Shown here: positions 59 to 1,419 of the stretch, one piece after another | How the letters are laid out: each line of letters starts with the position of its first letter | Position numbering within the stretch: position 1 is the stretch's first letter | From: Dimorphilus gyrociliatus | Lineage: Eukaryota; Animalia; Annelida | Length of the DNA: 64,000 bases | Reading direction: 5' to 3' | Assembly (NCBI GenBank): GCA_904063045.1 | Contig: CAJFCJ010000001.1 | Location: forward strand, 496,001-560,000 | Translations under genes and position numbers: made by a program | The notes under the pieces: model-generated | What the model was told of the DNA's origin: nothing | Seen by the model: only the letters and a program-made list of their open reading frames with translations | Databases searched by the model: none

Positions 59-1419
59 CCGGTCCTTACTATTGCGCTGAAGGCAACTTATTCACCGCTT
101 TAAACACTTGCATGGGATTCCCCAATGGAATCTATGTCGAGGATTGTATAACTGAAACTGAAAATTTCGCAAGAGAGGGTAGAATTGACCCCACCTCTAA
201 TTTGAGAAATGATAAAGTTTTCATCCTTCACGGAAAGGAAGATCCTACCGTGGGAATTGGTAAAGACTTTTTTTTTATATCTGTCCTTGAACTAAAAAAA
301 ACTTTTTGTTATCCTAAGATGCTGCTGCTAAAGTACGTCAGTATTATGAACATTACGGAGCTACAATTGCCGAAGAACTTAGTCTTTCTCTTGGACACGG
401 TGTTCCAACCACAAATTATGGTATATCTTGCCCAGATACTTCATCACCCTACCTTAATAAGTGTAATTATGAGTACGTTTAGTCGCTCTTTGAGGAAAAT
501 GAAGAAAAGATAATATTGTCTTTTTTTTATATTGTAGCGGTGCTTTCTCTCTTTTGAAGCATATTTATCCCGATATTATTAAACCATCAACTAACCATCA
601 ACTCACTGGAAAACTACTTCGTTATGATCAAGAAGAATTTCAAAAAGATCCAAACGATCATAGCTTTGATGACGATGGTTTCGTGTATGTACCAGCTGCT
701 TGTGAATTAGAAATGAACGATCTGTTTGCTCAAAATGAATGTGAAATTCCTGTTGGTGATCGTAAAAAATGCGGTTTCGATAGTATTACCGAAGAGCAAT
801 GTATTGTCAATAGAGGTTGCTGCTGGCGTCCTGATGGTCCATTTAATTGTTTTGAAAAAGCAACTGCTGATAAATGTGCTGTAAGCGCTAATGATAGAGA
901 GGAATGTGGATTTTCTGGAATCAATCAGACTATCTGCGAGAACGATAGGAATTGCTGTTGGAAAGAGGAGCAGCCTTATTATTGTTTTAGACCTAAGAGC
1001 GGAGGTCCTACTCCTGGAGGAAAATGTAAAGTTCATATGGTCTTTCACGGCTGTCTTCAAGGAAATGAAATGGTTGGCGAAGAATTTGTTCGAAATGCCG
1101 GATATAACGAAATTGCAGATGTTAACAACATTGTTGTTCTCTATCCAGAAGTTGTATCAAATGTCATGCTTGGAAACATGAACGGTTGCTATGACTGGTG
1201 GGGCTACGAGGATGAGAATTACGGTAATAACATAAGATAATTCTTACAAATATGATTTAATTACCAAAAGATATACATATATATATATATAAGTGACTTA
1301 TATTTATATTAATATATGCATATTTATATATTTCTATACATATATATACAGCGGTGAAAGACGGTGAGCAAATGTTGGCTGTATATAAAATGATTCAAAG
1401 AGTTTTGGGTCAAGATTAA
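59..1419 (+). CDS. Poly(3-hydroxybutyrate)/PHA depolymerase-like esterase (circularly permuted alpha/beta hydrolase) with two inserted trefoil domains; 5' end lies outside the window
   Basis: Exons 59-259, 319-472, 538-1223, 1352-1419 join in frame via GT-AG introns. Motifs: (A)GPYYCAEG..ALNTCM; HGKEDPTV (Asp); LGHGVPT (His); CNYDGAFSLLKHIY; GFVYVPAAC...CKVHMVFHGCLQG (oxyanion); AGYNEIADVNNIVVLYP; NGCYDWWGY; YAVKDGEQMLAVYKMI. These follow the order of the Penicillium funiculosum-type PhaZ. The nucleophile Ser box would be upstream of position 1. Confidence 0.9.
740..988 (+). other. Two tandem trefoil (P-type) domains, 740-853 and 875-988, inside the depolymerase
   Basis: CEIPVGDRKKCGFDSITEEQCIVNRGCCWRPDGPFNCF and CAVSANDREECGFSGINQTICENDRNCCWKEEQPYYCF both show the six-Cys trefoil pattern C-x9-CG(F/Y)-x-x-I-x-x-x-x-C-x4-(G)CC(W/F)-x7-CF. 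Confidence 0.9.

Follow-up and report, generated by a model that had tools for sequence, protein, structure and literature searches.

What is a pair of trefoil domains doing in the middle of the catalytic domain of a polyester hydrolase? The question is raised by DgyrCDS95, a gene of the miniature marine annelid Dimorphilus gyrociliatus whose last four exons lie at the start of the stretch of DNA analysed here, a window of 64,000 nucleotides (contig CAJFCJ010000001.1 of assembly GCA_904063045.1, positions 496,001 to 560,000 of the forward strand). To judge from its sequence, the product is a polyhydroxyalkanoate/polyhydroxybutyrate (PHA/PHB) depolymerase of type 2, that is, a circularly permuted α/β-hydrolase, with a single catalytic domain, and is predicted to be secreted. 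Inserted at the tip of a β-hairpin of this domain (strands 227–232 and 344–350) is a two-trefoil cassette on two linkers of about 12 residues, similar to TFF2 of the trefoil factor family (TFF). The explanation that we favour joins this architecture to an origin by exon shuffling and to targeting of the enzyme to a glycan matrix by the trefoils, and as a whole we give it a probability of about 0.55. Residue numbers refer throughout to the 431-aa protein (P0154; CAD5110723.1, UniProt A0A7I8V7Y6) and nucleotide positions to the window.

The Pfam Trefoil family (PF00088) matches the 107-aa insert twice (62 bits, E = 4.5e-17; gathering score 21) and scores 52 bits on full-length P0154, which also passes the threshold of Esterase_PHB (PF10503; 25.5 bits, cut-off 23). 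The hidden Markov model search suggested by the first-pass annotation of this DNA therefore returns a trefoil inside a member of the depolymerase family. Both trefoils follow the pattern C-x9-C-G-x9-C-x5-CC-x8-C, with six cysteines each, and a phmmer search against the PDB aligns the insert with both domains of porcine spasmolytic polypeptide (TFF2; E = 8.6e-7). When the insert is modelled alone by AlphaFold2 (AF2) from 14 tandem-trefoil sequences, the trefoil blocks reach a predicted local distance difference test score (pLDDT) of 64–79, which is moderate confidence; the best PDB match of the model is porcine TFF2 (1POS; 100 columns, E = 1.9e-5), and its single trefoils fit TFF1 and TFF3 with a root-mean-square deviation of 1.5–1.9 Å. 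Weak matches to the trefoils of acid α-glucosidase (GAA) appear in both the sequence and the structure comparison.

The four exons in the window (59–1419, + strand) are bounded by GT and AG and, once spliced and translated, are identical to P0154 from about residue 64 to 431; the predicted signal peptide and the serine of the GxSxG box are encoded upstream of the window, in the first two exons, and the locus sits on a 3.6-Mb contig. Exon 538–1223, which is 100% identical to residues 182–409, reads ...GFVYVPAAC, then the 107 aa, then CKVHMVFHGCLQG..., with C344-KVHMVFHGC(353)LQG following the insert. The first-pass annotation had placed the trefoil pair between these two motifs and within one exon; the placement was correct in every particular, and two transcript contigs (X18 and X20, described below) hold 538–1222 as an unbroken block. 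It had also noted the lack of a C-terminal binding domain, and indeed the protein terminates at ...QRVLGQD*, with no further domain C-terminal. The features of the gene in the window are as follows.

59–259, + strand: exon for residues ~63–130, with GT/AG borders; spliced contigs X18 and X20 join 258 to 318
241–243, + strand: codon GAT of the catalytic Asp124, within ...VFILHGKEDPTV; near-invariant alignment column
319–472, + strand: exon for residues ~130–181, with GT/AG borders and RNA contigs
396–398, + strand: codon CAC of the catalytic His156, within ...LSLGHGVPT; near-invariant column
538–1223, + strand: large exon for residues 181–410, with the hairpin, the trefoil insert, the oxyanion motif and the CYDWWGY motif
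677–703, + strand: first hairpin strand, GFVYVPAAC, to the near-invariant Cys236 (AF2 strand 227–232)
704–1024, + strand: 107-aa insert, residues 237–343, made up of N-linker, trefoil 1, short spacer, trefoil 2 and Gly/Pro linker
740–853, + strand: trefoil 1, residues 249–286, six Cys (Pfam stretch 249–287, regular expression and alignment)
875–988, + strand: trefoil 2, residues 294–331, six Cys (regular expression and alignment)
989–1024, + strand: linker RPKSGGPTPGGK, whose last codon, K343, is the site of the conserved phase-1 intron of other animals
1025–1054, + strand: second hairpin strand and oxyanion motif, C344-KVHMVF-H351-G352-C353 (AF2 strand 344–350)
1352–1419, + strand: last exon, ...AVKDGEQMLAVYKMIQRVLGQD and TAA stop; RNA contigs run on over 1351–1435

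The sequence on either side of the insert matches the PHB depolymerase of Penicillium funiculosum (2D80/2D81; phmmer against the PDB, E = 1.9e-15), with query residues 1–56 aligned to residues 164–215 of the 2D80 chain and 159–226 to residues 217–293. Because the flanks align to adjacent stretches of 2D80, the insert replaces a tight turn of a few residues. The small exons alone (61–258 and 321–467) gave no Pfam match, and the family scores only with the full protein. The AF2 core, built from a 137-sequence alignment, reaches pLDDT 95–99 and finds 2D81/2D80 in Foldseek (E = 1.7e-28, TMt 0.88). As expected for the circular permutation, the lipase box G35-I-S37-A-G39 lies N-terminal to H351-G352-C353, the order found in 2D80. 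S37, D124 and H156 fall in columns at least 90% conserved among the 137 sequences; C344 is invariant and H351, G352 and C353 are near-invariant, aligned to ...CSLHVALHGC of 2D80; and the near-invariant cysteines of the family are C68, C80, C167, C178, C236, C344, C353 and C398. The N-terminus, MFRATLVLFTLVNLSFSQ..., is hydrophobic and, read by eye, resembles a signal peptide.

With its catalytic residues intact, PHA depolymerase activity would be the default expectation for DgyrCDS95, and the long branch on which it sits would leave room for a shifted specificity. Taken by itself, an animal PHA depolymerase (PHAD) is no longer a novelty: animal PHADs from 66 species in nine phyla were described in August 2026 (Zeidler et al., Nat Ecol Evol 2026, PMC13642032), and hydrolysis of PHB and of its copolymer with hydroxyvalerate (PHBV) to 3-hydroxybutyrate was demonstrated for enzymes of a gutless oligochaete, an earthworm, a springtail and a sponge (PMC13642032). 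That this is an animal enzyme stands, given an annelid gene with GT/AG introns and spliced transcripts.

The insert lies between the conserved Cys236 and Cys344, nine residues upstream of Cys353 of the oxyanion hole, and strand 344–350 leads directly into H351-G352-C353. Because Cys236 and Cys344 are close in sequence in the family, we infer that a C236–C344 disulfide staples the hairpin. A conserved disulfide near the active site of Esterase_PHB proteins has been reported (PMC12103068) and most likely accounts for C353 and C398; a disulfide map of 2D80 was sought in open papers and not found. In TFF2, a terminal disulfide joins the N- and C-termini (PMC7350206), and the cassette and the C236–C344 pair would together make up the 14-Cys layout of TFF2. 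Because the oxyanion motif stands at the C-terminal end of strand 344–350, α/β-hydrolase topology suggests that the insert exits the sheet a full strand length from this motif, at the edge opposite the crevice.

The insert is kept in mature RNA. Logan transcript contigs of two runs, X18 (2017; 1621 nt, word depth 426) and X20 (2020; 1053 nt, depth 56), lie on the window in blocks 59–258, 318–472, 538–1222 and 1351–1435, with all three introns spliced out and the trefoil segment kept. Retention across 538–1223, on which the first-pass annotation had made its claim depend, thus holds in the spliced contigs of both runs, although assembled contigs could still miss a rare skipping isoform. Near-identical fragments over 784–1136, across the junction of trefoil 2 and HGC, occur in two metatranscriptomes (X1 and X2; one labelled as a coral metagenome, the other as a coded organism), differ from DgyrCDS95 at 1–6 positions and therefore indicate that Dimorphilus or a very close relative was present in those samples and expressed the gene. 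The last intron and the 3' untranslated region, at 1240–1350 and 1436–1520, consist of (TA)n/(TATA) repeats, runs of A and a (GAA)n(GGA)n tract, and were passed over as repetitive in the read mapping.

A second gene of the same kind is available from another read set (SRR23372229), in which a 2-kb genomic contig (L001) encodes an orthologue 83–85% identical, with the same six-exon structure and the same two trefoils; spliced, it gives 428 aa with a signal peptide and a GISAG box. Between DgyrCDS95 and this orthologue, the ratio of nonsynonymous to synonymous rates (dN/dS) is 0.15 for the insert, 0.04 for trefoil 1, 0.13 for trefoil 2 and 0.07 for the rest of the protein, at a dS of 0.7–1.6; none of the 14 cysteines has been lost. 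Purifying selection acts on the cassette.

How unusual is the architecture? We compared the spacer between the two hairpin cysteines in 245 homologues with the motif YxP..C...C.LH..HGC. It is 4–6 aa long in 227 and 7–14 aa in 12; among longer spacers, two are artefacts of the regular expression and one, of 45 aa, is probably a faulty gene model. Trefoils occur at the hairpin site in three of the 245 only, namely P0154, P0001, which is the L001 orthologue and has two trefoils, and P0002, a 140-aa fragment from Tara Oceans (MERC ERR550532) with one trefoil at the same site (YIPSGC-TEKTS-[trefoil]-...-CKLHVVFHGC). When 1.84 billion representative proteins were searched exhaustively with HMMER, 1813 relatives came out at E ≤ 0.001, of which only P0001 and P0002 scored better than 1e-30; the best 150 of the 1813 include three multi-trefoil proteins that have no depolymerase domain (P0045, P0051 and P0058). 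Targeted searches with the insert alone and with residues 222–372 of P0154, together with a metagenome scan, found no further trefoil-bearing PHAD, the length filter of the protein searches leaving out the fragments P0001 and P0002, and contigs encoding P0002 are not on record. Across proteomes, therefore, the architecture is not widespread, with two other sequences among the 1.84 billion representatives.

As for the statement of the first-pass annotation that it knew of no description of this architecture, a literature search combining 'PHB depolymerase' and 'trefoil' gave only irrelevant work, and neither 'trefoil' nor 'insertion' occurs in the main text of PMC13642032. The enzymes as a family have been described, and the gene model, with its automatic Pfam hits, is publicly available; the trefoil-bearing PHAD is, as far as we found, undescribed.

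The searches turned up two other kinds of mosaic. The metagenome scan gave an unrelated GC-rich gene (L007:87–1907, + strand; JGI contig Ga0307389_10048576) for a 606-aa protein with a signal peptide, two N-terminal trefoils and Pro/Ser linkers, the rest of which, on our own reading of its motifs, looks like a GH13 α-amylase catalytic domain; it would be another combination of trefoils and a polymer hydrolase outside GH31. Separately, P0151 (700 aa, Logan) and P0152 (611 aa, Styela clava LOC120344730) each carry two complete PHAD domains in tandem, joined by a Ser/Thr-rich linker.

Where the insert came from is suggested by the introns of other animals. We mapped exon borders at the genome loci of PHADs from Owenia fusiformis (annelid), Patella vulgata (mollusc), Patiria miniata (echinoderm) and Xenopus laevis (frog). 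In each of the four genes, a phase-1 intron interrupts the codon directly ahead of the second hairpin Cys (Owenia A239, Patella K247, Patiria N255, Xenopus R243), and in our alignment (A3) all four introns fall on Dimorphilus K343, the C-terminal edge of the insert. TFF domains are generally single class 1-1 exons and shuffled modules (Hoffmann review, PMC7350206), and a 1-1 exon in a phase-1 intron keeps the frame. The idea of a domain-shuffled enzyme is strengthened by this coincidence of a site conserved in bilaterians with a module of matching class, and the insert probably arose when an exon was shuffled in and its flanking introns were later lost. DgyrCDS95 keeps ancestral phase-1 introns at about residues 22, 63, 130 and 410, four positions common to the other animals, and is without six ancestral introns (159, 196, 207, 343, 357 and 401), so loss of those flanking the cassette fits general intron loss. 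The phase-2 intron at residue 181 (NYD|GAF, window 472/538) has no counterpart in the four mapped genes, whose nearest introns are in phase 0 at Dimorphilus 159, 196 and 207; it is a lineage-specific gain or an intron slide.

The five trefoils of P0154, P0001 and P0002 share an unusual 38-residue format, with loop 2 one residue longer and loop 3 two to three residues shorter than in other trefoils, which argues for one insertion event. The P0002 trefoil is identical at 22–23 of 38 positions to trefoil 2 and at 17 of 38 to trefoil 1, which points to one insertion event, after which either the trefoil was doubled in tandem or the P0002 line lost a copy. The trefoil-bearing PHADs, P0002 among them, fall into one group with the Owenia PHAD and two environmental sequences (support 90), consistent with vertical descent in annelids and not with transfer from microbes. 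Horizontal transfer from bacteria or fungi was rejected on four intron positions and phases common with animals and on the grouping with an annelid PHAD; contamination was rejected on the common animal introns, the annelid grouping and the place of the gene on a 3.6-Mb contig. In outline, the ancient phase-1 intron ahead of the second hairpin Cys would have received a single class 1-1 trefoil exon by shuffling; in the Dimorphilus line, a tandem duplication would then have made two trefoils of one, and the introns on either side would have disappeared as the genome was compacted.

What might such a cassette do? In the explanation that we favour, a Cys236–Cys344 disulfide would close it in the manner of the terminal disulfide of TFF2, and the cassette would leave the sheet at the N-terminal end of the oxyanion strand, on the edge opposite the crevice, so that catalysis stays intact. 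The trefoils would form a protease-stable, lectin-like targeting module that holds the enzyme on a glycan matrix, be it the mucus that lines the worm's gut or covers its surface, or the envelope remnants that lysed bacteria leave behind, where it would meet released PHA granules; they would thus stand in for the C-terminal binding domains of bacterial enzymes. The idea of a targeting module is supported by other type-2 PHADs, since they carry accessory modules, all of them C-terminal: fn3 and binding domains in bacteria (P0239, P0253, P0030 and P0117), and, in P0243 (427 aa, Logan), a Thr/Pro-rich linker and a C-terminal chitin-binding peritrophin-A domain (CBM_14, 33.5 bits). Peritrophin-A modules are known from arthropod peritrophic-matrix proteins, and P0243 suggests by analogy that PHADs of a further lineage may be fixed to gut matrices. 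Glycan or matrix targeting is, in our judgement, the most likely role of the trefoils, ahead of PHB binding, stabilization and neofunctionalization.

Several observations weigh against this explanation. Vertebrate TFFs are lectins for GlcNAc-α-1,4-Gal that make only two side-chain contacts, through Asp/Asn before Cys2 and Trp before Cys6 (PMC7221086; 6V1C). These positions are not conserved here, being Lys/Asn in trefoil 1 and Glu/Tyr in trefoil 2, and loop 3 has the two-to-three-residue shortening already described; because the two contact side chains are replaced, GlcNAc-α-1,4-Gal specificity is not to be taken for granted, and the ligand may be another glycan. An acidic and an aromatic residue do persist in trefoil 2, which may bind a sugar of some kind. 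Tethering to mucus, to bacteria or to granules, as the first-pass annotation proposed, is a hypothesis. On the structural side, the full-length AF2 model leaves the cassette at pLDDT <50 and does not predict its orientation to the core, while both the exit opposite the crevice and the C236–C344 disulfide are read from fold topology and conservation. Exon shuffling is likewise suggested by position and phase, and no intron flanks the cassette today (538–1223 in the window; 1132–1811 in L001). Furthermore, the catalytic-domain stem branch of the Dimorphilus and L001 pair is long (0.87), and a change of substrate is possible.

The best placed of the alternatives, though unlikely, gives the cassette no ligand at all and makes it a disulfide-rich, protease-resistant addition that aids stability, folding or secretion in the digestive lumen. 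The 14 conserved cysteines, the purifying selection and the unconserved lectin side chains would all agree with this, and TFF peptides are protease-resistant. Two flexible linkers and an independent tandem module would be an odd way to stabilize an enzyme, however, when hundreds of homologues are stable with a turn of 4–6 residues, and the low dN/dS at non-Cys surface positions of both trefoils suggests a binding surface instead.

Next comes the possibility, which we also regard as improbable, that the cassette binds the polyester itself, replacing the C-terminal substrate-binding domain of the bacterial dPHAscl enzymes and raising adsorption to PHA granules. DgyrCDS95 has no such C-terminal domain, whereas bacterial type-2 enzymes have fn3 and binding domains (PMC2666664); the canonical glycan-contact residues are missing, and loop 3 of trefoil 2 keeps an aromatic YY. 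Yet single-domain animal and fungal PHADs of about 330 aa degrade PHB without a binding domain (PMC13642032), and the trefoils are rich in charged E, D, K and R. Trefoils are also not known to bind hydrophobic polyesters.

A change of job for the enzyme is a slightly fainter prospect still: the fast-evolved catalytic domain would act on a different ester, such as the O-acetyl groups of mucin or of bacterial glycans, to which the trefoils would deliver it. Besides the long stem branch, the Esterase_PHB family includes acetyl-xylan and feruloyl esterases (PMC12103068), and trefoils accompany glycan-acting enzymes such as GH31 (PMC7350206) and the putative GH13 amylase of L007. Set against this, the protein has retained its catalytic triad, its oxyanion motif and most of the near-invariant PHAD columns, the best matches in both structure and sequence are PHB depolymerases, and it groups inside animal PHADs.

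Finally, we consider it very improbable that the insert is neutral, stems from an error of assembly or annotation, or is spliced out of the message: nothing speaks for this but the low AF2 confidence of the insert in the full-length model, and artefact and neutrality are refuted by retention in spliced RNA contigs of two runs at high depth, by the independent genomic contig of a relative (L001), by the Tara sequence P0002 and by the dN/dS of 0.15.

A neighbour noted at this locus is a single-exon open reading frame (ORF) of 108 aa at 2517–2843 on the − strand, about 1.1 kb downstream of the PHAD gene and on the opposite strand to it. It matches Ribosomal protein S12/S23 (PF00164, 101 bits) and is probably the nuclear gene for the mitochondrial S12 protein.

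Taken together, the architecture of the trefoil PHAD is well supported, the evolutionary mechanism proposed for it is clear and its taxonomic range is narrow. Animal PHADs were recognized only in 2026 as a route to bacterial carbon stores, and DgyrCDS95 shows domain shuffling to have reshaped the family in one lineage at least. It offers an unusually clean natural example of a class 1-1 module landing in a conserved phase-1 intron, and of a whole disulfide-rich module tolerated at a hairpin tip inside an α/β-hydrolase core. Tentatively, and at rather less than even odds, we propose that dinophilid annelids immobilize a PHA depolymerase by attaching it to a glycan matrix (mucus of the gut or epidermis, or the remains of bacterial envelopes) by means of an internal TFF2-like cassette. 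If so, this would be the first trefoil module inside a catalytic domain and the first matrix-anchored animal enzyme that harvests bacterial storage polyester and, with the peritrophin-A domain of P0243 as a parallel solution, the anchoring of PHADs to gut-lining matrices would be a recurrent strategy. Trefoils that target the enzyme would open a way to learn where and how a microscopic worm that feeds on bacteria breaks down PHA; they would also supply an invertebrate trefoil whose ligand can be tested, and a natural design for putting binding modules into polyester hydrolases; inert trefoils would leave a well-documented curiosity confined to a few taxa.

DgyrCDS95 can be set beside several known systems. 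The animal PHADs of Olavius algarvensis, Lumbricus rubellus, Folsomia candida and Amphimedon (PMC13642032) share with it the type-2 domain with the lipase box before the oxyanion motif, an intron-bearing gene, homology to P. funiculosum PhaZ and, to judge from the hydrophobic N-terminus of DgyrCDS95, probably a signal peptide; they are, however, single-domain proteins of about 330 aa, whereas DgyrCDS95 has 107 aa with two trefoils within the catalytic domain. The fungal enzyme itself (2D80/2D81) shares the motifs YVP..C, C.LHV.LHGC and NGCWDW and the lack of a C-terminal binding domain, at an identity of about 24%, but has a turn of a few residues where DgyrCDS95 bears the trefoil cassette. 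Bacterial extracellular dPHAscl depolymerases also combine a catalytic domain with an accessory, presumably targeting, module on flexible linkers (PMC2666664); their modules are C-terminal and bind PHB, in contrast to the internal, eukaryotic trefoil pair found here.

Trefoils are no strangers to mosaic proteins, and the TFF literature lists ZP1/ZPB, the GH31 glucosidases, frog mucins, APEG and βγ-CAT (PMC7350206). None of those listed there is an α/β-hydrolase, and none is described there as an insertion within a catalytic domain. The GH31 enzymes (sucrase-isomaltase, maltase-glucoamylase and lysosomal GAA) resemble DgyrCDS95 in joining a hydrolase of storage or food polymers to a shuffled trefoil (PMC7350206), although their trefoil is N-terminal to the catalytic domain and that of DgyrCDS95 lies inside an unrelated α/β-hydrolase domain. 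For the cassette itself the closest likeness is TFF2, or spasmolytic polypeptide (1POS, 2PSP), with tandem trefoils of six plus six cysteines and one bracketing pair, 14 in all; the Dimorphilus trefoils differ from it in a loop 3 shorter by 2–3 residues, a loop 2 longer by one and the replacement of the Asn/Asp and Trp contacts, and, where TFF2 is a free secreted peptide, the cassette of DgyrCDS95 is a loop of an enzyme.

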